In this document: one piece after another, positions 24,246 to 64,000 of the stretch | Layout: every line of letters starts with the position of its first letter | Numbering within the stretch: the first letter of the stretch is position 1 | From: Paramoeba atlantica | Lineage: Eukaryota > Protista > Discosea | Direction of reading: 5' to 3' | NCBI GenBank assembly: GCA_977017575.1 | Contig: CDRNVI010000073.1 | Span: forward strand, 62,001-126,000 | DNA: 64,000 nucleotides | Made by a program: the position numbers and the translations under genes | The notes under the pieces: generated by a model | Seen by the model: the letters and a program-made list of their open reading frames with translations, nothing else | What the model was told of the DNA's origin: nothing | Databases searched by the model: none

Positions 24246-27200
24246 ATAATATCTGTACCTTGTTGTTGTTTTTTTTCTTCCCTACCCTTTACAACGACAT
24301 GTTTTGCTTACTACTAGGGAAGGGCACACACCAGGCGTCGCAGGACTCTCCTAAGAGACCACGCGACGTGTCTAACCAAAACAAAAACCTGTCCCTGAAA
24401 GGCACTCCCACAGACAGGGTTGCAAAATCTGCTACCCGAACCGTCCAGGCTCTCATATCCCAAAAGAACAATGAGTCCCTTACCAGCGACACAGGAGAAG
24501 CACCCCCAGCTCCATGCAAACATCCTTGTAAGGACAAAAGCACCTGCGGACACCCCTGTTGCAAGCGGGGTGTAACGCGGCCACATATCCTGGTCACTCC
24601 TCACACAAACGAACTTCCCCCTCACCCCGTCCCCCCCACCACACAACAAACGGTTCCGGAATGCAAACACCGCTGCAAGGACAAAGCTCACTGTGAACAC
24701 CCGTGCTGCAAACGACACCTGGTACGCGTAGCAAAACCGGATACGTACAACAATAAGAGAAGTGACGCACCGGTGGATGCAAGAGAAGACGTGAAGGTGA
24801 TCACGGCTGTGAGTGTAATGCCGGTACAACGTAGCACACCCTGTAAGCATGTCTGTAAAAACAAACAGACCTGCGGGCACCCATGTTGCAAACGTAATCT
24901 TACACCAACAACATACGAACTCACGAGCACTACGGCGAGCGGTCAAGAACCCGGGCCCAAAGAAGCTCCAAGTACGCGACAAAGGGACGAAACGTCACCG
25001 CCATGCACGCGTGACCGCGTAACACAGGATGTGAAAGTACCGAAATCAAGCAACCTACTAGGCATGGCAGCGCGAGCTGCAACACGATATCTGTTTTCAA
25101 GCCGCACTCAACCGTACGCTAACGGCACTCCCTCAACCCCGGCGGTAACCGTACGACCTCACAGCAGCACCGGACAGGAACGCTTGTCGTACACGATAGC
25201 ACCCTGTCCAAAAGACGAACACGATTTACATGTACCCCCACCCAAGGAGGTTATTCCCCATCAAAAATCACCCACTGTTACCGTCGGTCGTGCCGTCGCA
25301 TCAACTGCCTGCTCGCTTGCCAAATTCCTACTTTTCAACGGCGTTCCATGTCAAACTCCGGACTCCCAAAGCCTCCCCAAACCTAAATCTCCAACACAAC
25401 TTCAGGTCCACGCCTTAACTAGCGTATGCAAGCATATCTGCAAGAGTAAAGATCAATGTAAGCACGTGTGCTGCAAGCAAGGCCTAGGCCCCGCCTCCGA
25501 ACAAGCAGACCGTGTCGAGCCCTGTAAGCATAAATGTAAGAACAAAGCAGGGTGCGGCCATCCTTGCTGCAAACGCACTGGCACACCGTTGACTTCGCTC
25601 GACACACCGATAAACAAACTCGATGGGCAGGATACTCTACCCACCGGCCCATGTACCCTTCCCAAGAATCTCGTCACACCGTCCCTAAACGCAACCACTA
25701 CGACAGCTGACCGTGCCGTTGCCAGGGAACCAACCATCCCGACTCCCAAAAACAAGGCACCGGAAAGTATCATTCTCTTGGACTCACCTTCCCCAGCACA
25801 CCAACACAGTCCGCGGAATGAGAATGGCGATGACGAAGTCCCATCCTGAGTTTTCCAACAAGCGCACAGCGTAGGGCGAATACAAAGCCCGCCGCTTGAA
25901 CAAGGAAGCCTCTTACCCCCATCACAACTGGACACCCATTTACATTCGGATGAATCCGAGGGTCCCCAGATTCCCACACAAACTCCCGACAGCCCGTCAC
26001 AGTATCTCCCGCCGCCCCAGGACCCCGTAACCCATAACCGACACAAGCAACGTTTCCACTTTATCCAGTCCCGGTCAAAACCTGTCAAACTCCGCCTCGT
26101 CAACGACAACACATGGAGATATTTCCCGGATGTGCATGCAGCATGCGTAAGCCAACTTGTGCGTAGTCGTATCCCTTCCCCCCAGGGGGCTGAAGCCGCC
26201 CTGTCCAAAGCGCTCAATGGGAAAAGTGCAGCACACGACATCGTCGTAGAAACGTGTACCGTAGACGAACTTATGGAAAAGAGAGCGTGTGACTTTTTAG
26301 AAGTTAGTAGAGTAGACTCAACAAGTCACATTTCTTGCCACGCGAACTGGGTATCTCTTTTTCACGACAGCCGCCTGGAATTATACAACCTCTACGCATC
26401 ACCTAGCTCAATGGGTAAAGCGGTAAACAAGGTACTGAACGGGAGAGCGGTCCCTGGGTTATCGGCGTTTCGGATCGTTCTGCTCCTTCGCACCGACGAC
26501 AAAGAAGAAGTACAGCCATCAAAGCCCCAAACGGTCCCAACACTTCCACCATACGAGATTATTTCGCGTGACCACGCCTCCTCCTTGAAGCGGACGCACC
26601 CATGCCAACATCGATGCATAAGTAAACTCAAATGCAGCCATCCATGCTGCAAAATCTATGGACCATCCCTCGATCAGGGAATCGAAGGAGACTCTGAGGG
26701 GAGCCCCAACGCAGGACAAGAGCAAGAACACCCCGAACTTAACCCCCCCACTTCCGCTTCCTCTCCGAGACTACTCGACGAGACGGAGTACCTTTTCCGC
26801 ACGGCACGATACATCCAGGGGGGCAAGTTAAACATAAACTTGGCTGACGCGCACTGGCACGAGGTGGAACGTAGGGCCCTCCACAGATGCAACACCTTGC
26901 TCACTGTCTCTGGCGACGCACTCTCCGCCGTCCATAACGCAGAACTACTGAGTGCAATACTAGCGGTGTCGGCATATGAAGTGGCGCGAGACGTCGACTC
27001 CAGGAAGGGTTTCATTATCCGAACGGCTCGAGGACATATAAAGGGGAAAGTCCGTCCATTAGAAAGCGAAAAAGTTGCCTTTTCCTTCTCTCGACATGTA
27101 AAACAACTACAAATGAAGCTGCGATACACACACGGCAAGGCTCCCCGCATGGCGTTGAAACAAAAGATTAAGGAAACCAAAAAGGCGGAACGTATATACA

Positions 27201-29810
27201 GCGCAGAAGCCATGGCCCAAAAACGGGAACTGGAAAGTCGCTGGGCACTTCAACAATTCAACCGCAATCCATGGACGGCTGCGAGTCAAACCTTGGACAA
27301 AAGGACAGAAGCAGAAAGTGTACCGGCCTATCCGACTTGCAATGTACAGAAAGTGGAAAGTGTGTTCACAACATTACTTACGGACCCCACTACAGTGCAT
27401 CACTTACCACCCCACGACGTCCTCGGAAACCGTCCTCTGGCAGAAATGACCTGGGACGAACTGGCTTCAATCGACATTTCGAACGCTCTCACATCAAAGA
27501 AAAACAGCAGTGCTCCAGGCCAGGACTCCATTACGTACCAGACTCTAAAGCGATGCCACAGCTCCCACACCCACATGGCAAACGTCTTCAACGCGCTAGT
27601 GCGCTTCAGCACATGTCCGACGTCGTGGAAAATATCCGTCACTCGCCTCATTTACAAAAAAGGGGAGCCTGACAACCCACAAAACTGGCGTCCCATCAGC
27701 CTGACTAGCGTACTAGGGAAACTCCTGCATTCCATCATCAGCCGGAAAATGACGAAATTCCTACTTGAAGCCTCTGTCATTGACCCCAAGATACAGAAAG
27801 GCTTTCTCCCCGCCATTAACGGTACTCTCGAACATACGCAATCCCTCTCAGAGCTCCTACGCCACTACCGGAAGAACAAGTGGAACTACTGCATGGCCCA
27901 GCTAGACCTCAGTAACGCCTTTGGTTCAGTCCCCCGCAACATCATCTTTGAAGCACTGGAATGGGCGAGAATCTCCCCAAACATTATTAAATACGTCCAA
28001 TGCTTATACACTGACGCAAGTACCCGCATTAAATGTTACGAAGGTCTGTCCAGCGCGATCCCAGCTAAACGAGGTGTCTTACAAGGTGACACTCTCTCTC
28101 CTACGCTCTTTCTGGTGATTATGGAGCTAGCCCTACGTTACATGGCAAAATCGTTTCCCTCATTTGGGTTGAACCTCCCTGGATTTCCAAAAAGCTTCCT
28201 AAAAGCGTACGCCGACGATCTCACGGTCCTGACGAATAGTGAAAAAGAAATGCAACTGGCTGTTGAAACACTATCCACGGTACTCGGTTCGCTTGGCCTT
28301 TCCATCAACGTCAAAAAGTGCAGAGTCCAATGTATGGCGTCCAAGAAAAATGATGAACACCCCGGCTACATGACACGACGTCCTCAAATTTTCATCAAGA
28401 ACGAAGCTATACCGCATATATGCGACGAAGGAAGTACGTTTCTTGGCATGAATATTGCCCCCGGTTCCCAACAATCCCGAGCCCTTTTCACGAAAGTTAG
28501 GCCCTTATTGAAGCGATGGCTTCATAACATTGACCAGTCGGCCCACGACCTCCCATCAAAAATTTGGATATATCAACACGCAATCATCTCTCGGCTACGC
28601 TTCACCTTTACTATACACCCATGTATCACGCTCAACTTTATTTTACGCCTTCAGAAAATGTGTACTCACTCCCTGAAACGGTGGATCAATGCGGCTAGAA
28701 CTACATGCAGCGAAGCAATCTACTCTCAGCGTGGATGGAACATCTGCAGCTTGTCCAGACTCTGGGAGGACTGTACAGCTGATCTTCTCTGTCAAATGAA
28801 GCGGTCCCGAGACCCGAACGTTACCGCCGCACTGCAGGAAAGAATACGGGCTGAAGAACATAAGCGCAGGAAAGGCCAAATTCGACCAGCATGTGACATC
28901 ACACACATACTGGAGGATCGCGACCTCGCAAAACGAACTCTTCTTGAGCTTAATGAGGACCGAATGATCAACGCACTACGCCGCAGGTCAACGTTCGCTA
29001 TTCAGTGGTGGGATATAGCCTCCGAGGAAGAACAGGCGAAAGATTTCAGCGCCGCGATAAACGGACTACGTAGCACTTCCCTTAGCCGCTTCGCAACTTC
29101 TTTAATGGTACAAAACACTCTCCCTACTAGGACAATGCTAAGGACATGGGGAATTCACGGCACAGATACAGTACAATGCCGAATTTGTAAACAAGAACCG
29201 GAAACATTACGACACCTCTTATCCTCGTGCAAGGTATCACTAGAACAGGGACGTTACACATATCGCCATGATTGTGTACTCTCCACCTTTGCAAACGCGA
29301 TACTCTCTTCCCCCCATACCGCAGAGGCACATTTTGATCTCCCACACCTACGTCAACTACCCGCATGGTGGTCCGACCTGGAAACACAGCTTCGCCCAGA
29401 TGGAATCGTCAAACTCAACGACGGAACTGAATTTATCGTTGAGTTGACGATGCCCTGGGAGGAAAACGTACACGAAGCCCACTGCCGAAAAGTAGAAAAG
29501 TACATAAATATTCTACACCGACGAAAAATAAGGTACTCAGACTGCCACTTAATATGCTTTGAAGTTGGAGCTAGAGGTCTCCCTTCTACGACGCTGCGTC
29601 ACATCAACCGTCTCTTTTTGGGTGACAAGGCACTCTCAGATAAGTGCCGTGTCGAAGTCATCCGAACGGCGATCCGGAGCAGCTTTCAACTCTGGCTGAA
29701 AAGGGAATCCCCTTTATGGGACAACCAAAGCTTTGGTTAGCAAATGGTCTAGCAGGCGACGTCATATGCGTACGTCCTGTTAGACTTTATTACTCTACAG
29801 GTAATGCCCT
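24246..29810 (+). mobile_element. Full-length RLE-type non-LTR retrotransposon, HERO-clade-like
   Basis: GTA on both sides (24243-45, 29811-13; 3-bp TSD or microhomology); intact RT motifs (WRPISL, QKGF, DLSNAFGSV, GVLQGDTLSP, YADDL); CCHC knuckle CRICKQEPETLRHLLSSC, RHD, RPD, IVELTMPWE, KVEKY, EVGARG; 70-nt 3' UTR without poly(A). Confidence 0.93.
24299..29740 (+). CDS. Retrotransposon polyprotein: six CxHxCx5CxHxCC motifs, RT and RLE, one frame with a single internal TGA (25847-25849)
   Basis: First ATG inside the element is 24299; I read the frame codon by codon from the TGA to 26132 and found no further stop, so track ORFs 24077..25849 and 26132..29740 are collinear. Confidence 0.85.
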
Positions 29811-41788: not shown

Positions 41789-42139
41789 TTAATTTTCTTC
41801 CCTCTGGTACTTTAAAACTATTCCCTTTCCAAATCCCTTATGATACAATCCCAAAACCACAAATTCACTTTTTCCTCAATTTTAAATTTTTTTCTCCCCT
41901 CTTCGTATTTCTCCCCCATGTCTCTCCAACCCCAATCCCCTTACCCCCTCCGAAAACCTTACCATTCATCTTTGAACCGAAACTTGTGACGACTCCCCGA
42001 AGGTACTCCAACCACATGCCAAATCCCGTTTCACCGCACTTTCCTCCTTAGCGCGGTGAAGACAACACGCAGCATGTCTAACGGGAACGCACGCATTCCC
42101 TTCATGTCCTATCGTATAGTTGCACTCGGAGCATGGTCA

Positions 42140-42990
42140 CCCTGTCACAGCTCTTGACGAATTATGTCTCGAATGGAATCTCGTGATCGATGGAGGGTGT
42201 TTACAATGACTCGTCAACATTCCAACCGTGCGATCCAACTTTACACCTTTACCAACTTTACCTGAGAAATCTCCGATACGTTCGATGGGACGTTCGACGG
42301 GACATGCCCTGCGGGTCCCGGTCTCTGTAAAGTGTACAAGATCCAAGTGTACCCTAGATCGACCAAGAACATTTTGTCTTGGTGGTGAGTGAACAGAGGA
42401 GTTCGACGCACACTAGTATCTCTCTTATAAATTTTGGCATCATGCATGCTGCCAACAACTGGTCCGCGAAAAAAGAATAGAACTCCGGCCAGAGTTAGCC
42501 AAACTTCCATCTTGATGCAGTGCTGCTGGTGCTTTCCCGAATAGGTGCTGTCTTGGGTGGTTCCATCAGGTGTTTCTCTCGGTTTCCCGAGAGATCCCGT
42601 GAACGACACGGGATCGTCGTGACGTCCAGCATGCAGGTTACGTCAGATAACCATGATACTCCCTGGGTAAACCGGAGCTCGGGGTTCATAAGCAGGGGTG
42701 AACGGCACACGAGTAAAATCATCCCGGAGAGTCCGAATTGAAATCAACGGGGCGTCCAGTGGGATCCACGCCCTTTGAACATCGTACAACTGTTCCCATG
42801 TGCAATTCAGAGAACAGATGCACAATGATGACTGAACGCGACGGTAATCAGTCTCCGTAACATCGGATCCATGCACACGTCGGAGCTCGTTGTAGAACTC
42901 CCGCACCTGTGCAGCCGAGATGCCAAACGTAGAGAGAGGGAATGAAACAATTGAAAGAAATTTCGATTTAGAAACAAAATGAGTAGGATT
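42140..42990 (-). mobile_element. Frameshifted PIF/Harbinger-superfamily (DDE_Tnp_4-like) transposase remnant
   Basis: CMLDVTTIPCR (IDGTHIP-like), YSGKHQQHCIK, GSMHDAKIY and LVDLGY across shifted minus-strand frames. Confidence 0.65.
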
Positions 42991-43963
42991 GTATTATAAT
43001 TGGGCGGAAATATTTTAGCGTGCACTCGTAATTAGTGGAATGAAATAGCAATTAGTGGAATGAGCTAGTAAATGGGGATAATTGTAATTGCCGAAATCGG
43101 CGCTCCTTTCCTCACAGCATCAAGATAATCAATAGATAAAACTTTTGGGGAGGGGGAGCACTCGATGAATATTCATCGAACGGACAGTGCGTTCGATGAA
43201 TATTCATCGAACAGGACATCCTGTTCGATGAATGGATTGCAGTACGACCCGTTCGATGAATCATTCATCGAACAGGATGTCCTGTTCGATGAATGAAAAC
43301 GCAATTTTTTTTTGTAAAAAAAAAGCTCGTTTCGGTCTGCATCATGCTCCTGGCTGCTACCTTGATCCGTAAGACAAAAACAAATCCGAAACGTTATCAA
43401 AAAGCGGAAGGATTCTTAAAACTATTGCCTCATAAGTTTACAAAGATAAAATCATAACTTACAAATACACAAACCTGCGGAAGTGGCAGACACAGGTCCT
43501 CAGTGCGCGACCCAAAAAATATTGGGTTGGGGGTACGTTCGTTGTACTCAACGAACTGCCGGATTTTCGTTGAGTACTCAACGAACGGAAATTTACGGTG
43601 CAAGTCAAGGACTTTTGCATATGTCAAGGACTTTTGTGGAACACCCAAGAATTTTTTTTGAATTTCATTTTCCGTGCGTTCAGTATCCTACACTTCACTA
43701 TATACGTTGACAACGCCTGCGTAGCGAAAACTACGAAATTCAGTGAGCTTCGCAAATTGCTTCCCACTAACGACGCACAGGGGAATCCTACGCGGGGTAC
43801 GGCTCAGGCCCGCTCACGCGGGCCCTCGCCGTTTCGCGGCCGCGCGCACCCCCGCTCACGCGGGGGCCCCCGCGCGGCCAAAATGGGTACTAAAATTTGT
43901 TATCAAGGTAGCTGGGCTTCGCAAATTGCTTCCCACGAATCTAGAGAGAAGCACACGTACAAT

Positions 43964-44002
43964 AATCTTTAACGATAAAGATATAGTTTCTGTACCTTGT
44001 TG
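43964..44002 (+). other. Full-length 39-nt spliced-leader-like exon AATCTTTAACGATAAAGATATAGTTTCTGTACCTTGTTG
   Basis: 39 nt, starts AA, ends TTG; last 20 nt match the T. brucei SL 3' end (ACAGTTTCTGTACTATATTG) at 16/20; not followed by GT; ATG 23 nt downstream. Confidence 0.72.
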
Positions 44003-44025
44003 ATTATTTACTTTTTTTACCTTTC

Positions 44026-44325
44026 ATGGGAGTGTTCACACGCTCCAAAGCAAAAGAATCAGGAGTAGCTCCTGAGATTTTGCCGCTCCCTCGTGCCCGA
44101 TGGAAAAAGAAGGCCGTGATGCCAACTCATCCGCCCGCCGTGCTAATATCCACCACCTCCGCATGGAGCGCGCGGGTCGCCAAAAAATATAATTATGTCC
44201 CAGGGCTACGCTCACAGTTGGGCCTTGCTCGCAAAGGGGGGCTTTTGCCTCCAGAAGCGGGCTACGCTCACAGTTGGGCCTTGCTCGCAGACGGGGGCCT
44301 TGCTTGCACACTTGGGCTTCGCTGA
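44026..44325 (+). CDS. Short basic ORF behind the SL-like exon
   Basis: ATG 23 nt after the SL-like exon; 3' half built from a 55-56-bp tandem repeat; no family recognised. Confidence 0.3.
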   Translation: MGVFTRSKAKESGVAPEILPLPRARWKKKAVMPTHPPAVLISTTSAWSARVAKKYNYVPGLRSQLGLARKGGLLPPEAGYAHSWALLADGGLACTLGLR

Positions 44326-45153
44326 CAGTTGGGCCTTGCCTCCAGACATGTAAACGAGATGGTAATGTTCAAATTCCCCCCAAAAAAAATCGAGACGAAA
44401 AATTCGTGCAGCAGTGCCCGGTGGATGAATGATTCATCGAACGCACTGCCCGTTCGATGAATATTCATCGAACGGGACGCCTGGTCATCGAACGGGACGC
44501 CGTTCAATGAATATTCATCGAACGCACGGTGCGTTCGATGAATTTTCATCGAATGCCCCCCCTGGCCAAACTTTTTACTCACTCTTTTTAATGATTCTAT
44601 ATAAATAAGTTATTTTTTTAAAGAAAATATATAGAAACCATTTCAATAAAGAATTACGTGGTACGATCGTCGAATTTATCTTTCATAAGTTATCCGAGAA
44701 TCATTTGAGTCTACTTACCGCGTCCTCTGGGTTCTCTTCGGATTTCACGTATCGGAATTTAATACAAATATCTCTCTTTTGGTTCATGGTTAAGACGCGT
44801 TTAAGCTCACCTGCAATGAAGTCGGATCGTGCTACAACCCCATTCTGGCCATTTTGAAACCGTGCTCTACTGATCTGTTGTCGGTTTATCGCTGAAAGTA
44901 TGTTGCAAATGCATCAATTAGTGTGAGGAGAATACAGGAAAAATACTCAAACTTTTTGCAAGATAAGATGTACTGCCTTTACAAACGGTGAAAACTCATA
45001 AAAATGAGAAAAGTTCGACCAACAAAAAGCTCTGTAGAAAGCCTTTTTTACAGGAAAATGTACGACTTTTTCTTCAAAAAATAATTGGTATGGACTAATA
45101 AGGACTGCGTGGAACAGCATGCGACAAGGGATTAATTTTACTAGAATGAGACC

Positions 45154-47298
45154 TTAATAAGGTAGTTTCCGTCCCTTAGCCTCGATACACAAGCATAGAC
45201 GTCGTTTGAAAGATGCATGCAATTTTTCAGAAAATTTCTTTGAGTCACTACTTTTTAGATATTTTTCACAGCTCTCTTCTATCTCTCTTATGGAGGACGG
45301 GTTATATATATAGAGGACTATATATATGTATATAGAGGACGGGTTCTCCTGATTTTTGATTTGTTTGAGACGGCACCATAAATTCTCAATCGGATTCAAA
45401 TCCGGGGAATCCGCAGGTCAAAAAGGCAGATGGGTCCCATCGACAGAAACGTATCCCCTCAAGCAAGAGGAAGTTCTCGATCTGGCGATCATACTTTCCC
45501 ACCACAAAGAAGTAAGCTTAGAACGATGCGGAGGGGCTCCATCGTCCATGTAGATCACCTGGGGATTTTTCCTGGCATATGGAATCCAATGATCCCGAAG
45601 AATCATCTTTCTATAATACATGCTGCCGAGCCCTTTCCCTTTTTGAGGCCCTTTTTGATTTTGACAAGTGTCATGGCGATAAAAGTGTTCAAAATCATCG
45701 CACCATCGAAATAGGATTTCCCCATTGGAATCAATTGCACCCCAGAGAAGGACTTTCGTAGGATGATGGGTTCGACTCCTTGCAACAGGATCTGTTGGAG
45801 ATTGCCACGCTGAGCGTGACAAATCACCCGCATGAATGTACACCTCGTCACTAAAGCACAAATTTTTCTAAAAGGTGCCCCCTGTCACTTCATCTTCTTT
45901 AAGCAGTGCGCGACAGAAATTCACACGGGCCTCCCTTTTCTCGGCAGAAAGATGAAGCGTACTAATTTTGGACCTAAACTTGTAATCATAATATGTAAGC
46001 AGAGCACGCATGCGATGCTGCGAGATAACAAATTGGTGTCCGGATGCTTCGGCCATTGCACACATCAGTCTGTTCAAAGTGCGATGGACAGGATTGGCCG
46101 CCATTATCTGGGGCAGCAAGACTCTGGCATTCTCAAAGTGTTCCCATTCCAGTAGCGTATTAGCGGTTTCTTTCACTTTTTCGATTCTACCATCAGCTGA
46201 AGAATGAGTCATCAGCAAACGATGACAAGTCGCTTTATTGAGAGTAAGCGTATGACACAACTGTGCCTGGGTAAAAAGTCTTGTGCTGTGCAAAACTTTC
46301 AAAGCGACGACTCCCGTTTCGGATAAGCTTCCCCTTCTTTTCCATATAACCGGAAGTCCATTCAGGTGCGTCGTTTTGCGCTTCATAGGTCGGACGCGTT
46401 TCCGCTTAGAGTTCTGGCCCGAGATTTGAGAGGCTAACCGTGTTCTAAGAACAGCCATCGCGGTCAGAAGGGAATGCTGATCCTTCAAAACAGAGTTATG
46501 TTTCTTTTTAAGCTCATCGTATTTCTCTTGGAGCTCGAAGTGTTCTCTTTTTAGAAGATTGTATTCAATATGTGTTGCTTCGAATTTTACTCGAAGACGA
46601 TGAGCTTCAGCTTTGTGCTTTTCCTTTTCGCGTTCTACGCGTCGTAAGCGCGTGTTCAATTTTCGAATTCGCGTTTTCGCCTTCCTCATTTCCTTAGAGC
46701 TCGAGTGGAGAGAATGGCGGGCGCTGCGAATATCAGGTTGTGGATCAGAGGTCTGAGGGTCAGTAGGTGGAACATCAGGGGTCTGAGGGTCAATAGGTGG
46801 AACATCAGAGGGTTGAGAGTCAATAGGTGGAACATCAGAGGGTTGAGAGTCAATAGGTGGAACATCAGAGGGTTGAGAGTCAATAGGTGGAACATCAGAG
46901 GGTTGAGAGTCAATAGGTGGAACATCAGAGGGTTGAGAGTCAATAGATGGAACATCAGGGAGCTGAGGGTCAATAGGTGGATCATCAGAGGGATGAGGGT
47001 GGGAAGTTCGTGGATTGGAGGACTGAGGCCGAAACATTTGGCATAGGCCTTCTGCTGCTTCGATAAGCCGGATGTCAAAGCATTTTTCAGGTTCCACGAA
47101 ACTCGGAGGAACTGGATAAAGATGATTATCATCTTGGACAGAGCCCTGTATTTCTTGATTTATTTTGAAAAGAGTCTCTTCTTCAAAAAAATCAGACTCA
47201 GAGTCCGATATGTCCGAGTCTGTTGACTCATCTTCTGGATCCCAGTTCGGATCATCCTCTGAATCAGAGCTTGCGTACTCCGGTGAGTGCGAAGACAA
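45154..47298 (-). pseudogene. 714-codon transposase frame with two in-frame stops (TAG 45868-70, TGA 45418-20)
   Basis: Track ORFs 45868..47298, 45418..45861 and 45154..45399 are one frame: F*KNLCFSDE, WGAI, MDDGAPPH, LPF*PADSPDLNPIENLW. Confidence 0.88.
46744..46990 (-). repeat. 30-bp coding minisatellite, about 8 units, encoding (PPIDSQPSDV)n
   Basis: GTTGAGAGTCAATAGGTGGAACATCAGAGG repeated on the + strand inside the transposase N-terminal extension. Confidence 0.95.
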
Positions 47299-48299
47299 TG
47301 ATGAAACGTCAGAAGAGCCTGATCGGCAAACTGTTGAATTTTTAGAATTGCTCTCCGAAGTTGCCTCCGAACTCGTGTACTCCTAGTTCGTGTAACCTGA
47401 GCTCATGCTATCAGAGCTCCCATGCGCCCTGGGAGATATGTGTGACATGGACATCGTATAAAAAAAAAGTACTTGTTAATCAAGTTTTGTAAAAAGCGTA
47501 TGTCAAACAAATTTAGTTCAGCAAAAAAAACGATTTTTTCAAACGTTAACGTACGTCAATTTAAACTATTTTTCCTGTCCTCTTGTGGTATTCCCATAAA
47601 CTTAGCTTTTTACAGAACTAAAAACAAAGCCACGGTGCTCTCTATAGAACGTTTTCAAAATTTTGGGACGGAGTTGTACTTTGCGATTAAAAGCCGCCTG
47701 GCAGGAAGTATTGTCAATGTATAAATCACTCGTAATTCGTCTCCCGATTCTAACCATGGACGTGATCCCCACGTGAGGGGGCCGTTAGCGGTAAAACGAG
47801 CAGGATCAGTAATAGGAGCAATAGGGTTTTTTTGGCTCGTCATTCGCTTTGCGACCCCCCGGTATCTTAGCACGTACACGGGCAATTTCTAGCGAATAGT
47901 AATCAATGTCCAGTAATGGAAAATCATAGGCAACGGTTGGATCGTCATTCCATACTGCTTCCATAGCACCCTACTCGTCACTCTTAAGACGGACGTTTCC
48001 AATGACGGTTTCACGCACAGGATCGCCATGAGGTCCCCACACCGCCTCAACTAAAGAGAGAACATGAAGATTATGCCCTCCATCGCCTGTTTTAGCAACT
48101 CAAATGACATTGTGAGTAGAAATCGTTCTACACCCAAGCCAAAAATTATTATCGCTAAAATTCATGGCAATTATTGTTTTTTTAATTAAAATTTGCATAG
48201 CTTCGACAATAATTAAAAACTCAATAATAAGTCGGCAGTGTAAAACAAGTGCAAGAGAGTTAATTTTTTCTTTTTTTGCCAAAAAAGTGTGAAATAATG

Positions 48300-55900: not shown

Positions 55901-58540
55901 TTTACTTCCCTTGCGGCTACTCAGCTGTTATCCTGCTGCAATCTAAGTTTTGATGCCATTTCTGGAGCACACACTGTTCCTCTCGAATTTACCTTTTCCA
56001 AGAGTTTTCCCCGAACGCAGTCTTCACCTAAAACCAATGTAGCGCAAAGCAACACAAAGGAAGGCCATTTTTCGTACTCTTCGAAGGATAAAAATTCTTT
56101 TTCGCTTGAAAATATTCCATGTGATGTTACACTATGTGCCATCGTACGAGATTCTACTCGAGACGTACTTTATTTTGTACGATGGGAAAATTTGCCTTTT
56201 GCCTCTGCCACGGAGCCAACAGATGCAGAACCCTGTGTTTATTTGTGCGAAATACCCGCGCCTTCCCTGTTGTTTGATCTTGTCGAAAAAGCGCAAAATA
56301 TTACAAACGAGGCTGCGAATCAAGTTGTGCAACATGATCTTGAACTCAACAAAGAACCTCCAAAAGAGGATGCAGAAAAAAAGAATTCTTCCTCGGAGAT
56401 TTTATCTAAAAATACGGCAGTCAGCAACAAACGCGGTTCTCATTCAGAGCGCAAAGCTTTTTGGTCACAGCGTGAAGCATTTGACCAAAAATTGGGAGGC
56501 GTTGTAAGCTCTATGCAGGAAGATGTTTGGGGTTCTCTCTGCTATGCGTTACTTCCCTCTTTTCGAATGGATGCAGATCGATTTGAACATGTAGAGAATA
56601 CAGAACCCACAAAAAGTGAAACAACCTCTTTATCTCATGAGGAAAAATTCTCCTTAAAGGAAAAAGCGCTGCTTTCTAAATATCGCACTCGAATTTATGC
56701 ACTCTTTCTTAAAGGTAATTCCGATTCTGAAATAGATTCTTCGCGAGCACAAACAATGCAAAATGATAACTTTTCCTGTGTCTTGGGCGTGCTATCCGCC
56801 TTCATACGATCGGTTCCTTTTCTTGAAAATCCTCCCACCATCGAATCATGTTCAAACCGTATTGACACCTCCAAAGCATCCACATCGTCTACGACTCCAG
56901 CCGACCGGCTTTTAGATCTTATATCCTATTCGATTTGCTCCGACGCTTCTATTCTCATGGAAACAGAACCTTTTAAGAAACGTTTAAAAGACCTCTTACT
57001 AGAATTCTATGAAGACTCTTGTGAAATGTACGATTCCATTTTTGATGGGATGCTGCCTCAAAAACTTTCATTCAATGTTTCGGAGAATCCATCGTACACT
57101 TCTACGCTTTCTGGAACGTCTCCAAAGTTGAGTTCTTCGCCCCTTTTAACGAATCTCTCCGAAACGGATTCAACTTCCTCGTCTTTCTCAAGAACAAAGC
57201 GCTTGCTTTCTCACCGTAAACTTTGGCTTTTGTTCGACCAGCAACCTCTGAATTCTCAAGGTCTCACACTTCATCATTTCCCATGGGAATCTCTTCCCTG
57301 TTTTCGATGGTTTCACAAAGGCAAACCATCTTCTCATATGGTTCGAATTCCCTCTTTGCGATATGCGATGCAAAGCGTATCGAATTTTGCATTTTTGAAT
57401 GCACAAAAATGCTCCAAAAATACACAGCTTAATGCTGTGTCTCCAAAACAGAACATCAAAGGATTAAAAACGAATACTTTGAGATCGGATCAAGCCTATC
57501 CCTATTCTCTGTATTACTGTTTGAATCCGATGGGCGATACCCATCGGTCACAGGAAACGTTAGAACCTCTTTTACGCAAACTTCCCAACAGCACGGGAAG
57601 TGTTGGAAAAATAAAGAGAGATGGATACTCAACGGTGGACTGTTGCGATCCGATTTCAGGTTTGCATACAGGAGGGACGTTTCTGTATGTTGGACATGGC
57701 AGCGGCTATCGAATTCTTCCTCGACATAAATTGCTGACTTGTGCAGGAAAAATGAGACGAAGGGAAGCCGAGCAATCCAAACGATATTCGGAAGATCGTG
57801 AGGGAGATCAGGAAACTTTGACAGAAAATGAAGAGCCCACGCCAAGGAAAAGTTTTTCGGAGTATCTAAAAACACCGTTTTCTCTTTTGGGGAAACTAAA
57901 AGAATATATCAAACCCTCATCCGAATCCTCTACGAATAATACGGATAATAACAAATCCTCGGAAGTCGAAATGTCGACGGGAAAAGAAGATTCCGAAGAA
58001 GTTTCTCGACACTCCCATACATTACTGGATGAAGCGCAAGATGGGAATTTTACAGAATTGCAAGCTTCCACCCGTAGTGCATCTTCATTGGTCTCATCTT
58101 CTATTCTTCCTTCTCACACTGTGCTACTTATGGGTTGCTCCAGTGCATCCTTGAGTGAAGGTCCGTATGCGATTCCTTACACTTTACTTCACTTTGGGGT
58201 GCGTCAAGTCCTGTGCACTTTATGGGATATAACAGATGGCGAAATTGATCGCTACACGAAGCAATATCTCAAAACTGCATTTTTACCTCAGGAAACCGAT
58301 TCCGATGGAAAACCAGAAGCGAACGGGTCTGCTCGATCTTTGAGCGAAAACGTTGAAACAGAAATGGGGAATCTTTGCTTGAAGAAAGGAAGCGCCACTT
58401 CATCTAAAATCGTTGTCCTTGAAACAGATCGAAACGTGCTCCCCAAAGATTTTGACCTGCACCACAACATGTTACGCGCACGAGAAGCCCCAAGGCTGTT
58501 TTATCTCACAAGTTCATCTGTAGTCTGTTATGGCACCTAA
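53000..58540 (+). CDS. ESP1: Separase (peptidase C50)
   Basis: LHHFPWESLP, RIPSL, YCLNPMGD, FLYVGHGSG, LLMGCSS, LWDITDGEIDRY, VVCYG at the C-terminus of an 1846-aa ORF. Confidence 0.93.
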   Translation: MVLLSTHLPSSRSQKHRSQLHRTQTEHSDCKDHVNGSITSSQSSEHSDTSLVPQESNSPSSSNLKPSSHLHDLEGTKVSSLSKAQCSHELFSSSQLKTLSQSKTDLSAWKDWIHTLNVMDHAVRVFQVTQHLSSGASTKPFAKPLAFEVAHILRQKKCDSVVLKWPFESDFIWESLDDVTLHGRSQLPLCCSLYIQSVLFLLLLALYDATERYSEDNIAKAETDDLSSLNSSLSLLAFCFSYANDASQSMENQRLSSPKPEKHMDQNLEKCKDLCDKIYLYGLHFVCKIAMGNLKDASHPIWILLAHLFSRQTQQAKNKDLMIVPENSIVSKGQGNPSKDSLSKEFTNLRFPINLSSSIFQNVESCLTALLARLIQESWKDFQLGQQKTFDFLESKLDRTVLCHVVTQSRSRTSPKCFQIDLGNDSSKYIPALTTTSSLFLIRFAAVCLLPWIRRMKSEKGTSVVLPKKMHTLLMFIAHSLHYEGYTPLALELWNSLCDEKCCDQSDLYKKDAYLSHALTMSNLEIISKWVDSTQDTLEFLQKLHISGQSLKAETGAADPLQRGSQIAETETTLNDLSVFKRIFTLYHNSFSESSSFPAENILTDLLPLLQKYIPWIVDTQHFRDASHLNLSNQKGTNTPQDTQPQNTVIPKRNTENDTEKTADAISSLPAEHSNEKTSNTNETVIKTQTKNKSHSISSLETAHYIIDSCFFVAELFLSRGDIPSSTRSLCAVLSVLLGSATLLSTRHLLRVLECFSLLSGSVESLVSFSSNDFNDMVQTYRTRSLFAFVSPVSFTRWAFREREFEMRISPAILYSSLNNSASDSIEDDRNDKGKNVLSLVEAEERIYLAPRSLHDINDAFNSLHSMQRTLADVKKDEHRQIELLISTALDADRTLQCPQLLFVLKEFMSRIERLFRRTLKLRSEATKDRLFPIHFWSLHQSCSGHCHTSDRKEFRLTLARIAILCGFTSLAATQLLSCCNLSFDAISGAHTVPLEFTFSKSFPRTQSSPKTNVAQSNTKEGHFSYSSKDKNSFSLENIPCDVTLCAIVRDSTRDVLYFVRWENLPFASATEPTDAEPCVYLCEIPAPSLLFDLVEKAQNITNEAANQVVQHDLELNKEPPKEDAEKKNSSSEILSKNTAVSNKRGSHSERKAFWSQREAFDQKLGGVVSSMQEDVWGSLCYALLPSFRMDADRFEHVENTEPTKSETTSLSHEEKFSLKEKALLSKYRTRIYALFLKGNSDSEIDSSRAQTMQNDNFSCVLGVLSAFIRSVPFLENPPTIESCSNRIDTSKASTSSTTPADRLLDLISYSICSDASILMETEPFKKRLKDLLLEFYEDSCEMYDSIFDGMLPQKLSFNVSENPSYTSTLSGTSPKLSSSPLLTNLSETDSTSSSFSRTKRLLSHRKLWLLFDQQPLNSQGLTLHHFPWESLPCFRWFHKGKPSSHMVRIPSLRYAMQSVSNFAFLNAQKCSKNTQLNAVSPKQNIKGLKTNTLRSDQAYPYSLYYCLNPMGDTHRSQETLEPLLRKLPNSTGSVGKIKRDGYSTVDCCDPISGLHTGGTFLYVGHGSGYRILPRHKLLTCAGKMRRREAEQSKRYSEDREGDQETLTENEEPTPRKSFSEYLKTPFSLLGKLKEYIKPSSESSTNNTDNNKSSEVEMSTGKEDSEEVSRHSHTLLDEAQDGNFTELQASTRSASSLVSSSILPSHTVLLMGCSSASLSEGPYAIPYTLLHFGVRQVLCTLWDITDGEIDRYTKQYLKTAFLPQETDSDGKPEANGSARSLSENVETEMGNLCLKKGSATSSKIVVLETDRNVLPKDFDLHHNMLRAREAPRLFYLTSSSVVCYGT

Positions 58541-58755
58541 TATCACATTCTCTTTTCAACTCTGTCTTACGCACAAAAATACCGCAAAATATTTCAAGGA
58601 AAAATACACGTTTTCCTTCAAAAACATTTTTTTTTTCAAATTTTTATCTTCAATCCAAATTTTTTAATCATAATCCTATTTATATTATTATTATTCCTAT
58701 ATTTTTTTGAAGCTCATTTTTTTCTTCCCTCTTTTTCTCCCTCCTTCCTTCCTCC

Positions 58756-60036
58756 ATGTCCTACGCCCTTGCGGAGCTCCCCGCAGGCTACGCCCTCATC
58801 CGCCTCGAAACCGCCGACACCCCCACACTCCACGCGCTCCACAAATTCAAATCCACCAAGGAGGCGCTGCAATCCACCAGCGCTCTTCTTCAAAGCGAAC
58901 TCTCCCAGCCGCTTAAAAAATTCCTAAAACGCAATCTCCCGAAAGAGCAGGTCGAGAGCCTCAGCGTTCTGGATGCGAAATTGGGCAAACTGATCAAATC
59001 GGAGCTCAAACTCCCGATTATCCATGGGGATGAGGTGCTGGACCAGATGCGGCTGATTCGTGGCGCCATGCACAATCTGCTTACGGAGATTTCCCCCACA
59101 CAGATGCACCAATCCAGTCTGGGACTCTCCCATCATTTGAATCGCTACAAACTTCGGTTTTCTCCGGAGAAAATTGACATGATGGTGGTGCAAGCCGTAG
59201 CCCTGCTCGATGATTTGGATAAGGAATTAAACAAATACGCCATGCGTGCCCGTGAGTGGTACGGCTGGCATTTTCCGGAACTTAGCAAACTGATTGCGGA
59301 TAATGTGGTGTATGCGAAAATCGCGTGTGCCATGAAAACACGCGATCACGCGAAAGAAGCCAACCTCGAGTCTTTTCTCTCCGAGGGGGAGGCCGGGAAA
59401 ATTCGAGAAGCCGCTCGACTCTCCATGGGGACCGAAATCAGTGAGGACGACGTGGAGAACATCTGTGCGCTTTGCACGGAGGTGATCTCGACGTCTCACT
59501 ACCGCGAGCAGCTCGCGGCGTACCTCTCGAACCGGATGAAAGCGATTGCGCCGAATTTAACCACCATGGTGGGGGAACAAATCGGGGCCCGGTTGATTCA
59601 AAAAGCCGGGAGTTTACTGGCGCTAGCAAAGTTCCCCGCCTCTACGGTACAAATTTTAGGCGCCGAGAAAGCTCTTTTTCGTGCGCTGAAGAAGAAGCAG
59701 GCCACTCCGAAGTATGGGCTGCTGTATAACGCCTCCTTGGTGACGCAGGCCCCGACACAGAATAAGGGCACCATGTCGCGTGTGCTGGCCGCGAAGACCT
59801 CGTTAAGCGCCCGGGTGGATAGTTTCGCGGAAAGTGAAATGGCCCCGGCCGCGGGGTACCGTGAAAAAGTGCTCCAGCGCTTGAAATCGTTTGAGGAAAC
59901 CGTGGCGTACGGGCGTACCGGAAAAACGAGAGGCGCGAACGTGGGGGCGTCTGGAGGAGGAGAGGGGGGACATCCGAAACGGCATCGAGGGGAGGAAGGG
60001 GAAGGGGGGAGAGAGGGAAAGTCGCGAAAGATGTGA
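58756..60036 (+). CDS. NOP58: Box C/D snoRNP protein NOP58
   Basis: LGLSHHLNRYKLRFSPEKIDMMVVQAVALLDDLDKELN, REWYGWHFPEL, STVQILGAEKALFRALK, TPKYGL. Confidence 0.96.
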   Translation: MSYALAELPAGYALIRLETADTPTLHALHKFKSTKEALQSTSALLQSELSQPLKKFLKRNLPKEQVESLSVLDAKLGKLIKSELKLPIIHGDEVLDQMRLIRGAMHNLLTEISPTQMHQSSLGLSHHLNRYKLRFSPEKIDMMVVQAVALLDDLDKELNKYAMRAREWYGWHFPELSKLIADNVVYAKIACAMKTRDHAKEANLESFLSEGEAGKIREAARLSMGTEISEDDVENICALCTEVISTSHYREQLAAYLSNRMKAIAPNLTTMVGEQIGARLIQKAGSLLALAKFPASTVQILGAEKALFRALKKKQATPKYGLLYNASLVTQAPTQNKGTMSRVLAAKTSLSARVDSFAESEMAPAAGYREKVLQRLKSFEETVAYGRTGKTRGANVGASGGGEGGHPKRHRGEEGEGGREGKSRKM

Positions 60037-60487
60037 AAAGTTGAAGAAAGGGGGTAAAAAAGTGGGAGTGGGGGTATTTTTTGAAGTAATTGGAGGGTAG
60101 GGGTAAGGAAATAAGGGGGAATGGTTTTGTTTAAGAGCGTATTGAATGGTTTTTAATAGCAGAATAAATTTGCAGGTTTGAATCATTTTGTAGTACAGTA
60201 AATTCCCGAAACAATTTTTTGGACGCAAGTAGAGAGAGTAGTTGTTGTCACAAACTACAAGTACCCGAAAACATTTGTGTACAAATTTTTGGCTCTTTTT
60301 TATTTATGTGAACTTAACGTTGTCATTTTGCAAAGTGGTCAATCTCGCACGTGTTTTACATGATAATTTGAAACAAAAGATAATTTTCTTTATCAAGTCC
60401 TGTATTTCCAGCAGTTTTTTATTTCATTTGTCCGCTAGTCTAACTTCGTTTTTTTCAATCCCATTTCGCCCTCTTCAATACATAAAA

Positions 60488-63400
60488 ATGCCATCTGCGC
60501 TAAGGAAACCTACCGAAGCACGTTCTTATATACAATCCCTAAGGCGACTTTCCCTTTTATTTACGCTTCTTCTCTGCAGTTTCGGGTACGGACCTTTTTT
60601 CTCGCATCGGAACACGAAATCTTTCCACCCGCACTCCTCTTTTTCCCTTCCGGGAGTTCGTGCCGAAATGGTGGGTATTGATTTGGGATCGGAATTTGTA
60701 AAACTTGCCAAAGTGCAGTCCGGTCCCTCCCGAGGGGCCCCGATTGAGATTGTGCTCAACGAACAGACACGACGAAAAACACCCAACGTGGTGGGGTTCC
60801 GAAATTCTGATTTATACGTGGGTGAGAACGCAAAGGCGTTATGTGGTCGTTTTCCTCAACATATGGCGCCTATGATGAATCGAATTGTGGGGGAAAGTTT
60901 TGATTCGAACGGATTTACGGATGAGAAAGAATCGGAAAACGGTGATTCGGAAGCCCATCCCCACGAGCGCACCTCTTTAAAAGACTGGTTTTCACGTGAT
61001 TTAGCCTTTACCAATCAAATCGAGCGTAACCCCGCACGTAACACCATTTCCGTCGTTCTCCCGGCTGCCCCTTCTCCCTTTCTTCCCACCGAAGAAAATG
61101 TCGACCCCTCGGAGGGAACCTCAGAAGAAACCTCACCCCCTGCATCCCCAAATACCCCAATCTCCCCTCTACCCTCCGGCATCCACCCCTACGACCCCGA
61201 AACCCTTCTCGGTTTCCTCTTTTCCTATCTCTATGATCTCACCAAAGCCGCAAACCTCCACCTCCCCTCCTCCCCTTCGTTGTCTCCAAAACCGAGGGCC
61301 CAAAAAATAAAGAAACAAAAATCAAATCAACCTAAATCTTTTTCAAAAGAATCAGAAGATTCTAAAGAAGAATTTCACGAATCTTTTATGGCGCCTCAAA
61401 TGAAGAATATTGAAGCCGCTCTGGTCGTTCCCTATTTCTTCAACACACGACAACGCGAGGGTTTGGTCCATGCCGCGGCGCTGGGAGGGATTGCGGTGAA
61501 CGCCATCCTCCACACCACAACCGCGGTCGCGCTGCACTACGGGGTCCAAAACCGAGGCCTGGGCAACGCCTCGCTGTATTTTATGGTGTTCGACATGGGC
61601 GCCTCTCGCACCGAGGCGGGGATTTATCACTATGAGCCTCCGGAACCGGGCGCCCCGAACGCGGAGGCTTTTGGCACACTTCGCACCGTTTCACTCGCGA
61701 GTGATCGGTTTTTAGGCACCCGATTGTTTGATCGTCGTCTCGCGGAGGTGATCGCTGCGGAATTCACCGCGAAAACGAAAATAAAGATTGACCTTTCATT
61801 AGGGGCAAAGGCCTCGGCTGCGGAACGAAAAGGTTCAGCCTCGTTGTTGCGCGCCGCAAATGGGCTGCGGGAAGTGCTAAGTGCGAATCGGTACGCTCCG
61901 GTTACGGTGGAGAGTATTGTCCAGGATCGGGACTTTTCGACCACCATCACACGTGAGCTTTTTGAATCAAAATGTGTGGATCTATTTGAACGTGCACGGC
62001 GGGTCGCGGAAAAGGCCCTGCAAAGAGCGAATCTTTCGCCGGATGATTTAGCCTCATTGGAGATTCACGGTGGAGGGGTACGGATGCCCAAGGTTCTGGA
62101 CGATTTAGCGCAGCTTTATGGTAAACCGGTTGATCGCACGTTAAATGGGGACGAAAGTGCAGCGCTGGGGGCTGCTTTTTATGCTGCAAAACGAAGCGGA
62201 ATGTTTTCTGCTCGAGGCTTTCGCATTGAAGAGCTAAATCCGCATTCGCTGGACTTCGTAGTGTCCGATGGGAAGGCTGTGCCGGAGAGTGCAGAGCCAA
62301 TGGCAGAGGAAAATTCTGAAATCGACACCAATTCGGTACTAGGGGATGACACAAAGGCGGCCGTTGCAAAAGGTAAAATCTCGACTCCCCGAACTCTTTT
62401 TGTGGGATATAACTCATCTTATCCGAGCTCACGAAAAACTATTACGCTTCATCGCACAGAGGATTTTTCAGTTTCTTTTCGTGAGGACAAACGTCTTGAA
62501 AACACAGTCACGCTTTCTCCGATTCATGACGCACTTACGTCCTGGGGTTACTTCGACCCCGAGTTGTCTCATCCGGATAATAAACAGAAGGTACAGCTGG
62601 AAACCAGAATTGGGGAAAACGGCATTTTAGACGTTTCACAAGCGGAATTAGTATTCAACGAGTGGCGTAATATTTCTCGAATGGTCCGAAAACGAGCTGT
62701 AGCAAAACCGAATCAAGGTGGAGAACAGGGAAACTCGGAAATGCAAAACGTTGAAAAAGGGGAAAATCAAAAGGATTCGGCACTATCCGAAGATAATTCT
62801 GCGGTATCACAAGAAAAGACAACATCTGACGTCGAAAATGAAGTTGAAACAATGAAAACAAATGAAGAACCTGCGACGAAAGAATCAAATTCTTCTGTAC
62901 AGTCAGACAACTCATCTGCCAAAGACTTCACAACCCCTACCGATCTCAACAACGACCTCGTTTTTGAACGCGAATACAAACTTGAGCTCACTGAACATCG
63001 CACCCCGTTAAATCTTATCTGGACCTATTCCTTCCCTCAACCCCTTAGTTCACACGACAGAATACAAACGCAGTCGTTTCTGCATCGACAACTTGCCTAT
63101 GAGACACACAAACGAAAAACAGCCGCGGCTAAGAATGATCTCGAGGCTTTGCTTTTGGACACTCTTACCGAATGGATTCCCCATCACCGAACGTATGGGT
63201 TTATTAAAAAACATGAAGAAGAACCGATACGCACAATTATGGAAGATATTAAGGCATGGCTGGAAGAGGGAGATGGATGCACCATGTCGGTAACACATTT
63301 CCATTTTGAGGAAAAAATTCGTGAGGTTCATGCCGAAAAAGAAAAAATTGAGGAACGCAAAAGGCCGAAAAGGGAAGAGAAAACTATGAGTAATGAAACG

Positions 63401-63529
63401 GCAGGAAATGGAAGCAATGCTTCGCAAGCTGCGCCTTCTTCTGGTGTAGACGGAAATGATACCTCTACCGAAATGGACACAGAATCCGTATCCTCAACTA
63501 ATTCTGCTACGCAGAAAGAAGAATTGTAG
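60488..63529 (+). CDS. HYOU1: ER HSP70-family chaperone HYOU1/GRP170/Lhs1
   Basis: Hydrophobic signal segment, VGIDLGSEFVK, IVLNEQTRRKTP, FDMGAS, NGDESAALGA, C-terminal KEEL; first ATG 60488. Confidence 0.92.
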   Translation: MPSALRKPTEARSYIQSLRRLSLLFTLLLCSFGYGPFFSHRNTKSFHPHSSFSLPGVRAEMVGIDLGSEFVKLAKVQSGPSRGAPIEIVLNEQTRRKTPNVVGFRNSDLYVGENAKALCGRFPQHMAPMMNRIVGESFDSNGFTDEKESENGDSEAHPHERTSLKDWFSRDLAFTNQIERNPARNTISVVLPAAPSPFLPTEENVDPSEGTSEETSPPASPNTPISPLPSGIHPYDPETLLGFLFSYLYDLTKAANLHLPSSPSLSPKPRAQKIKKQKSNQPKSFSKESEDSKEEFHESFMAPQMKNIEAALVVPYFFNTRQREGLVHAAALGGIAVNAILHTTTAVALHYGVQNRGLGNASLYFMVFDMGASRTEAGIYHYEPPEPGAPNAEAFGTLRTVSLASDRFLGTRLFDRRLAEVIAAEFTAKTKIKIDLSLGAKASAAERKGSASLLRAANGLREVLSANRYAPVTVESIVQDRDFSTTITRELFESKCVDLFERARRVAEKALQRANLSPDDLASLEIHGGGVRMPKVLDDLAQLYGKPVDRTLNGDESAALGAAFYAAKRSGMFSARGFRIEELNPHSLDFVVSDGKAVPESAEPMAEENSEIDTNSVLGDDTKAAVAKGKISTPRTLFVGYNSSYPSSRKTITLHRTEDFSVSFREDKRLENTVTLSPIHDALTSWGYFDPELSHPDNKQKVQLETRIGENGILDVSQAELVFNEWRNISRMVRKRAVAKPNQGGEQGNSEMQNVEKGENQKDSALSEDNSAVSQEKTTSDVENEVETMKTNEEPATKESNSSVQSDNSSAKDFTTPTDLNNDLVFEREYKLELTEHRTPLNLIWTYSFPQPLSSHDRIQTQSFLHRQLAYETHKRKTAAAKNDLEALLLDTLTEWIPHHRTYGFIKKHEEEPIRTIMEDIKAWLEEGDGCTMSVTHFHFEEKIREVHAEKEKIEERKRPKREEKTMSNETAGNGSNASQAAPSSGVDGNDTSTEMDTESVSSTNSATQKEEL

Positions 63530-64000
63530 CCTCACAAAATCACAAAAGACGGACGTGGTTCAACGAAACAGGGATGATGAAATCTTAAAATAGACGCCAT
63601 TTTGCTTCTTTTTGCTGTCTTCATCTTTTAAGTCATTTTCTAACACGTTTTGCGTACAGAAACTTATGGGCGATGCATTTCGTTGTTATTGAATGAATAA
63701 ATTATGTCCCTTTTTTGGTTAAAATTCGTAATATGCACCATTGTATTACTTACCATAATGACTTCAATTTTATGATCTGCTTTTTAAAGCTCCTGATTTC
63801 TCACCTATTTTTTCAGTAAATTAGACCCAAACGTTCGCTTGGTACGCTTCCTATTTTTAATGCCATTTTCTTCGCTCCCTCGCTCTTGGGCTTTTTCACA
63901 ACCTCTCCTACGTCATCTCGCGCTCCTTTTTTCTGTGTCTCTTTTCTTTATCCGAGACCGTTACAGAACTTCCCCCTTTCCGAGTGTTCTCTCCTCCGAC

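Follow-up and report, generated by a model that had tools for sequence, protein, structure and literature searches.

A probable spliced-leader-tagged retrotransposon 5' end carried by terminal-inverted-repeat DNA transposons

The window analysed here, a 64,000-nucleotide (nt) stretch of contig CDRNVI010000073.1, contains at 43147-44567 a DNA transposon with terminal inverted repeats (TIRs). Within it, 36 nt of spliced leader (SL) at 43967-44002 run without an intron into a 23-nt 5' untranslated region (UTR) and an open reading frame (ORF). The SL, the UTR and the first 24 codons are likely to be the fossil 5' stub of complementary DNA (cDNA) made from an SL-bearing retrotransposon and since multiplied by DNA transposons. 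The SL is the organism's own and its homology to an SL RNA gene is confined to the exon, the UTR and the N-terminus of the ORF derive from a non-long-terminal-repeat (non-LTR) retrotransposon, the SL is joined on its left to a repeat named S1, and two TIR families have moved the composite. SLs are added only at the RNA level, so an SL that stands in DNA without its intron cleanly marks reverse transcription. Their function is to donate the cap (cap4) structure that is put on the SL RNA itself. Positions are those of the window and refer to its + strand unless marked (-).

ENA assembly ERZ24900291 contains the identical locus at 100% (ctg3096l) together with a haplotig of roughly 99% identity that covers its right part. 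The other repeat copies, given as L-numbered loci, were fetched from this assembly, and about 130 kb of loci were sampled.

The spliced leader in RNA and in DNA

The first-pass annotation described a complete 39-nt SL at 43964-44002 (+) that is not followed by a GT donor. The 39-mer is present as a single copy in the window, with no matches expected by chance, and the sequence from 44003 onward, directly after the TTG, reads ATTATTTAC, confirming that the donor is missing. The leader is not quite complete. Its first three letters, AAT (43964-43966), are assigned to S1 because SL-less S1 units diverge only after ACGTACAATAAT, and the 36 nt at 43967-44002 are SL-derived, corresponding to SL nt 3-38 and ending at the exact exon end, TTG.

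To identify the true SL, reads were examined over 57700-63600. We infer that the run used, X4, is RNA from its gene-by-gene depth and from contigs that end at gene borders. The 5' ends of these RNA-like contigs carry the last 22-23 nt of the 39-mer, which makes it the organism's own leader. In the Nop58 contig GATACAGTTTCTGTACCTTG(TTG) is unaligned before 58707, and in the contig of an HSP70-like gene ATACAGTTTCTGTACCTTGTTG is unaligned before 60459; neither sequence is encoded at its locus. The 5'UTRs of both genes are pyrimidine-rich and short (46 nt for Nop58 and 29 nt for the HSP70-like gene). Neither junction has an AG acceptor in the genome, which reads TTTTTTTG followed by AAGCTC at Nop58 (58700-58712) and TTTTCAA followed by TCCC at the HSP70-like gene (60450-60462). 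Both haplotypes agree at these junctions, and a few bases before the second junction one haplotype has G in place of T. A literature search with the 16-mer at the SL 3' end found no matching paper.

A metagenome scan for the SL 3' end followed by GT returned one contig, L010 (Ga0316204_10168667), which carries the SL RNA gene of an environmental kinetoplastid on its minus strand. The exon occupies 61-24 and the TTG is followed by GTATGAGAAGC, which we take to be the conserved start of kinetoplastid SL introns; the contig end cuts the intron after 23 nt. By analogy with other kinetoplastid SLs, the exon would be 38 nt long if it starts with AAC. A 5S ribosomal RNA (rRNA) gene lies at 450-568 of the same contig (98 bits), 400 nt from the SL exon. 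SL/5S linkage in bodonid SL arrays is described in the paper that PMC7859406 lists as its reference 41. Aligned to the L010 exon (L010:24-61(-)), the SL stretch matches at 36/36 positions in all other copies of the element. The window copy matches at 35/36: at 43984, inside the conserved ACAG, it alone has T, where every other copy and the RNA have C.

Outside the exon, the element and the L010 gene share nothing. No upstream similarity was detected between them (477 of 500 shuffles score as well), and on the downstream side their similarity breaks off precisely at the donor site. The homology is restricted to the exon, as would be expected of a copy of a trans-spliced RNA and not of one derived from an SL gene. 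It has the structure of an SL relic, being the organism's SL, ending at the exon end and joined to non-intron sequence, and at 44003 the GT donor and intron start expected in an SL RNA gene are both absent. Decay of such a gene, the alternative named in the first-pass annotation, or a chance resemblance could be entertained if only the AGTTTCTGTAC core were shared, since this core recurs by chance at 63654-63664 (-). The 36/36 match to a real exon goes far beyond the core, and the locus has no GTATGAGAAGC intron start, no upstream similarity to an SL gene and no 5S linkage. No 5S gene was found in 43100-44600, while L010, whose species is unknown, has one. Rfam gave nothing on the whole window at gathering scores, and on 43100-44600 at E<=1 it gave only sub-threshold palindrome hairpins. 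The decayed gene is thus ruled out, and with chance resemblance included this explanation is almost certainly wrong. An ACGTA motif upstream of the SL was considered as homology to an SL-gene flank and rejected by the shuffles.

The retrotransposon cargo and its junctions

Behind the SL, the 23-nt spacer (44003-44025) and the ATG at 44026 are present as first described. The spacer is pyrimidine-rich and represents the 5'UTR of the source RNA. Its T-richness is unremarkable, short pyrimidine-rich 5'UTRs being normal in this genome. Its last 9 nt are shared with a retrotransposon copy in the same assembly (L016, ctg3761l), and from there the similarity extends through the ATG and the first 24 codons, so that 44017-44097 matches L016:1247-1327 at 96.3% over 81 nt (blastn, E=1e-32). 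In L016 the matching stretch opens a 74-codon ORF located just upstream of a 1225-aa RVT_1 ORF of a non-LTR retrotransposon, and 20 of the first 22 residues of the two short ORFs are identical. Because the end of the UTR and the N-terminus match the ORF that precedes the reverse transcriptase (RT) ORF, the source RNA is the retrotransposon's own transcript. The first-pass annotation had proposed that the 5' end of a reverse-transcribed, trans-spliced mRNA is carried as cargo by a cut-and-paste element. Its reverse-transcribed origin and its carriage by a TIR element both stand, with the correction that the RNA belonged to a retrotransposon and not to a host gene. In the L016 copy itself the SL is absent, the UTR is short of its first 14 nt and what stands upstream is a different repeat, which we read as ordinary 5' truncation. 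Look-ups of the 1225-aa RT protein returned generic RVT_1 clusters only in the ESM Atlas and, by exact sequence, its own contig only.

The 99-codon ORF at 44026-44325 is a chimera. Its codons 1-24 come from the retrotransposon, with homology ending at about 44097, and the remainder is unrelated repeat DNA. Downstream of 44159 the ORF runs through one hairpin arm, AAAAAATAT and three tandem units of 55 nt (55-56 nt; 44182-44347), and this repeat DNA, which spans 44160-44357, is found elsewhere without the SL (L008 and L006:245-368). Small related TIR elements (P0122, P0127) encode residues 24-70 as well, there preceded by different starts. No homologue of the 99-aa product outside the repeat family was found in 5.8 billion clusters or 1.84 billion representatives, and it has no Pfam match. 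The ORF is probably not a functional gene.

These data also bear on the idea that the 5' end of a host mRNA was retro-copied and captured, in which case the 99-aa ORF would be a real and possibly expressed cargo gene. The anatomy is mRNA-like, with a short pyrimidine-rich UTR before the first ATG, as in Nop58 and the HSP70-like gene, and the exact 99-aa product is retained in four copies, on four contigs. However, the N-terminus is that of an ORF preceding an RT ORF, residues 24-99 are encoded by repeat DNA that includes the 55-nt tandem units, and neither homologue nor Pfam match points to a gene. The copies are 99% identical throughout, so conservation of the ORF is uninformative on selection. 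A host mRNA as the source is very unlikely.

The left junction of the stub is with S1 (43597-43966, ending ...ACAATAAT), a repeat unit that also exists SL-free and in tandem and is 97% identical to L013:2657-3024, with a further match in L014. The SL-less units in L013 and L014 run through ...ACGTACAATAAT and continue with TGCACGATTTTT..., after which the unit restarts. The S1 tandem arrays without SL (L013:2657-3141 and L014:60-554) have a GC-rich core between GTCAAGGACTTTTG repeats. S1 occurs in many variants, and its spurious ORFs fall into 14 or more protein clusters at the 90% identity level, indicating an abundant repeat. The motif ACACGTA (at 43953, and after the repeats in family C copies, described below) was considered as a target site duplication and rejected, as SL-less S1 units continue differently.

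A second retrotransposon in the window has the same SL mark, which fits the proposed origin of the stub. It is a non-LTR element at 24246-29740 (+) with an RVT_1 and zf-RVT ORF at 26132-29740 and a pyrimidine-rich 5'UTR from 24266. In front of this UTR is TCTGTACCTTGTTG, equal to the final 14 nt of the SL; further upstream the sequence is not SL and there is no SL gene around. Its RT domain is only about 22% identical to that of the L016 element, placing it in a different family. No other copies of its 5' end were found among the fetched loci. Adjoining the element, at 23340-23420 (-), is a degenerate SL-like stretch (...ACGATAGTGATAGATAG...TCTCTACCTTGTTG) that is perhaps an SL relic of greater age, interrupted by an insertion. 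An SL copy with a diverged 5' half, followed by GTACATTTTGC, lies at L008:6549-6581 (-) within a retroelement, with its RVT_1 ORF on one side and its RNase H ORF on the other.

The carrier transposons

The TIR element placed at 43147-44567 by the first-pass annotation is flanked on either side by the 8-bp target site duplication (TSD) AAACTTTT, at 43139-43146 and 44568-44575, and its ends are confirmed by further copies. The family it defines is designated A. The left end (43147-43296) begins with a 36-nt TIR starting GGGG (43147-43182), has a boundary common to L004 and L006, and inside the TIR contains subterminal palindromes built on TTCGATGAAT/ATTCATCGAA; subterminal repeats of the TCATCGAA type also occur. 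The right interior and right end occupy 44358-44567, with the TIR at 44532-44567 ending ...CCCCCCCTGGCC. The TIRs are imperfect: compared directly, the two ends match at 31 of 36 positions, and the terminal bases are GGGGAGG... at one end and GGCCAGG... (reverse complement) at the other. Between the left end and S1 lie the family A interior (43297-43528) and a nested stretch, 43529-43596, that is the left end of a further TIR family, of B' type, which reads GGGGGTACGTTCG... and contains CAACGAAC palindromes. The interior includes a module, M (43461-43513), that recurs in related repeats (L006:189-241, 375-419 and 1026-1074). The B'-type left end precedes the same downstream sequence at L007:196-245 and 3957-4010.

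Two other full copies have the same first and last base as the window element and perfect TSDs of their own. These are L006:1814-3233 (99.6% identical to the window element, TSD GTTAAATG) and L004:4123-5541 (99.1%, TSD ATCTGATA), and pairwise identity among the three copies is 99.1-99.6%. Family A (1.42 kb) therefore has at least three full copies, and truncated or near-full ones occur in L005, L007 and L015, all about 99% identical. In L004 and in L006 the insertion has cut an RT ORF in two, near residues 538/539 in the former and 634/635 in the latter, and each time the second half resumes where the first breaks off. DNA comparison turned up no paralogous empty site for any of the three full copies; at the protein level, the continuity of the split RT ORFs is equivalent to empty-site proof. 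Family A is a genuine class II element that has been mobile recently. It is non-autonomous, since no transposase ORF occurs inside 43147-44567. In having TIRs, a TSD, no transposase ORF and several near-identical copies at unrelated sites it resembles a miniature inverted-repeat transposable element (MITE), and its 1.42-kb length exceeds the classic MITE size.

The search for further TIR elements with the same SL-ORF cargo, suggested in the first-pass annotation, was successful in the same assembly and extended to a second family. The family C element L009:3438-4507 (1.07 kb) has different TIRs (GGGTACGAGGACACTTCCGTGAG...) and a perfect 8-bp TSD, CGATCTTT, and it carries the same S1-SL-ORF block at 98%. 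The right end of family C is contained in L006:1-1250. A small family B element (L007:3440-4299) retains only 44093-44226 of the block. Families A, B, B' and C share CATCGAA-type subterminal motifs. Inside, they are built as mosaics of common modules, and their ends are swapped. The SL block was counted at eight loci on seven contigs, and ORF variants that read through the SL (P0139, P0142) suggest more copies.

With eight copies available, the possibility that the DNA-encoded SL is functional can be considered, for example if element transcripts act as trans-spliced or if the SL serves as a landing pad for SL-specific retroelements. The SL is intact in the eight sampled copies. However, these are about 99% identical everywhere, so that intactness reflects youth and not selection, and the window copy is already substituted in the conserved ACAG. 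None of the eight (0/8) has an insertion in the SL. The SL is without nt 1-2 and has no upstream similarity to an SL-gene promoter, and SL function resides in cap4, which is added to the SL RNA. A functional role is highly improbable. The earlier suggestion that the cargo might do without trans-splicing, thanks to an SL encoded in the DNA, found no evidence and conflicts with the cap-donating role, as a cap cannot be DNA-encoded. With no intron, no SL-gene promoter and no cap possible, the DNA-encoded SL is a passive fossil. A broader idea is likewise very unlikely, namely that DNA transposons spread SL-tagged retrotransposon 5' ends whose SLs act, for example, as sites of recombination or landing, or give rise to transcripts that engage the trans-splicing machinery. 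If it were true, the universal mRNA leader would be a mobile DNA module common to class I and class II elements.

The first-pass annotation called the transposon Merlin-type. Families A, B and C all start with 5'-GG, and four perfect 8-bp TSDs were found (AAACTTTT, ATCTGATA, GTTAAATG and CGATCTTT). The usual termini of hAT and P elements differ from these ends, and by its termini and TSD family A fits Merlin better than hAT or P. Merlin elements have TIRs with terminal 5'-GG and TSDs of 8-9 bp (PMC8101967). Like Merlin and its non-autonomous derivatives (PMC8101967), the elements described here have GG-ended TIRs, 8-bp TSDs and internal tandem repeats; unlike Merlin, no DDE_Tnp_IS1595 transposase is linked to their ends. 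Among 20 neighbouring ORFs Pfam detected no such transposase, only a DDE_Tnp_4 fragment and retroelement domains.

Origin of the stub, related systems and host setting

The anatomy of the composite suggests the following history. The RNA of a non-LTR retrotransposon would have been trans-spliced, joining the SL to the 23-nt UTR and the first ORF. A reverse transcriptase would then have copied this RNA to within two nt of its capped end, giving DNA that began with SL nt 3-38. From general knowledge, a stop of the enzyme at the modified cap4 nucleotides would be expected, and this would explain the missing nt 1-2. The copy would next have come to lie beside an S1-type repeat inside a non-autonomous TIR transposon, the present junctions being those described above. 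All but its first ~130 nt would have been lost, and the rest would have been fused to repeat DNA that by chance stayed open for 99 codons. Class II transposition has multiplied the composite, with families A and C as carriers.

Several observations weigh against this history. The record of run X4 is silent on the kind of data, SL nt 3-15 are backed only by L010 (species unknown) and the element copies, and the two trans-splice junctions observed (2/2) are non-AG, which is unexplained and unusual for a kinetoplastid. The stretch 44098-44159 has no identified source. No full-length master retrotransposon with the SL and a complete UTR was recovered from the sampled loci, and neither a poly(A) nor a target duplication belonging to the retro-insertion itself is visible where only the 5' stub is present.

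The last of these points, and the fact that non-LTR insertions normally retain their 3' ends whereas only a 5' stub is found here, favour a DNA-level route to the same fossil. In it, an SL-headed genomic copy of the retrotransposon, or free cDNA, would have served as the template when an excision break was repaired, and the stub would have arisen by template switching or filler capture. The mosaic interiors of families A, B' and C, with their sharp breakpoints, are the pattern that abortive gap repair should leave. Nevertheless, no donor locus with the S1-SL junction was found outside TIR elements in the sampled loci, and a junction at SL nt 3 is expected of reverse transcription near the cap, whereas a copy made at the DNA level would have no reason to start there. 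We regard this route as rather unlikely. For the entry of the retrotransposon stub into the transposon, we cannot separate direct retro-insertion followed by internal deletion from gap-repair capture.

The host of these elements is a kinetoplastid. The + strand of the window has tightly packed long ORFs, which include UCH, PCNA, separase, Nop58, an HSP70-family protein and leucine-rich-repeat proteins. Such dense packing of genes on one strand agrees with polycistronic transcription and with mRNAs that receive an SL by trans-splicing. No named protein is more than about 70% identical to Nop58, and an exact look-up of the full Nop58 ORF returned no record. Its best named matches are kinetoplastid (Perkinsela 67%, isolate PhM_4 66%, Neobodo and trypanosomatids about 62%), and the window therefore comes from a kinetoplastid, one to which no named database entry is close.

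Class II elements were long considered absent from kinetoplastids, and kinetoplastid Merlin has so far been reported only as TIR-less remnants in Bodo saltans and Perkinsela (PMC8101967). Unlike these remnants, the present copies are 99% identical and have perfect duplications. The occurrence of at least two TIR families with perfect 8-bp TSDs and 99% identity between copies points to active DNA transposons in a kinetoplastid.

The closest known parallel to the SL block is in dinoflagellates. There, retrogenes with relics of the dinoflagellate SL (DinoSL) have an intron-less SL in DNA directly before the 5'UTR and ORF, as here, and these relics are read as a mark of reverse-transcribed trans-spliced RNA (PMC6050394, PMC5585692, PMC12014239). 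The present case differs in being from a kinetoplastid, in deriving from a retrotransposon transcript instead of a host mRNA, and in consisting of a stub of only ~130 nt that was multiplied by DNA transposons instead of by further retroposition. No kinetoplastid counterpart of DinoSL relics was found in the literature searched.

Two other systems invite comparison. The SLACS, CRE and CZAR retrotransposons of trypanosomatids are inserted in SL RNA genes, after nt 11 of the exon and before nt 12, with the flanks of the gene kept. They resemble the present case in that a retrotransposon is physically associated with SL sequence. In contrast to such an insertion, SL nt 3-38 are contiguous here, they are fused to the element's own 5'UTR and no SL gene is present. 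Pack-MULEs and the captures made by CACTA elements and Helitrons are class II elements carrying gene fragments. As in those, a foreign passenger has been amplified by a class II element and chimeric ORFs have arisen, but the passenger here is a 5' end from the cDNA of a class I element, and the SL tag identifies it as such.

The stub indicates that retrotransposon RNA was copied back into DNA almost to the cap, after what would have been trans-splicing. It gives physical support to the integration of cDNA into kinetoplastid genomes, a process so far invoked indirectly, for RT-mediated loss of introns (PMC11613528). As a practical warning, DNA-encoded SLs will mislead the mapping of trans-splice sites and gene starts from SL reads in this genome.

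The region between the gene runs, 42000-47500, has the appearance of a transposon graveyard. At 42241-42609 (-) there is a fragment of a PIF/Harbinger transposase (DDE_Tnp_4, Pfam E=1e-9), and at 45154-45861 (-) are broken ORFs that by eye are like Tc1/mariner transposases, an impression to which Pfam gave no confirmation. The fragment and these ORFs would be further class II remains in a kinetoplastid. Adjoining the Tc1/mariner-like ORFs, within 45154-47298 (-), is a 476-aa ORF with seven repeats of the PSDVPPIDSQ type.

Elsewhere in the sampled assembly, the 22-kb contig ctg3643c (L011/L012) has an identical 153-aa ORF and its neighbour genes twice, about 10 kb apart. A tandem repeat, an artefact of assembly or an extrachromosomal circle could each account for this duplication, and the 'c' of the contig name presumably stands for circular.
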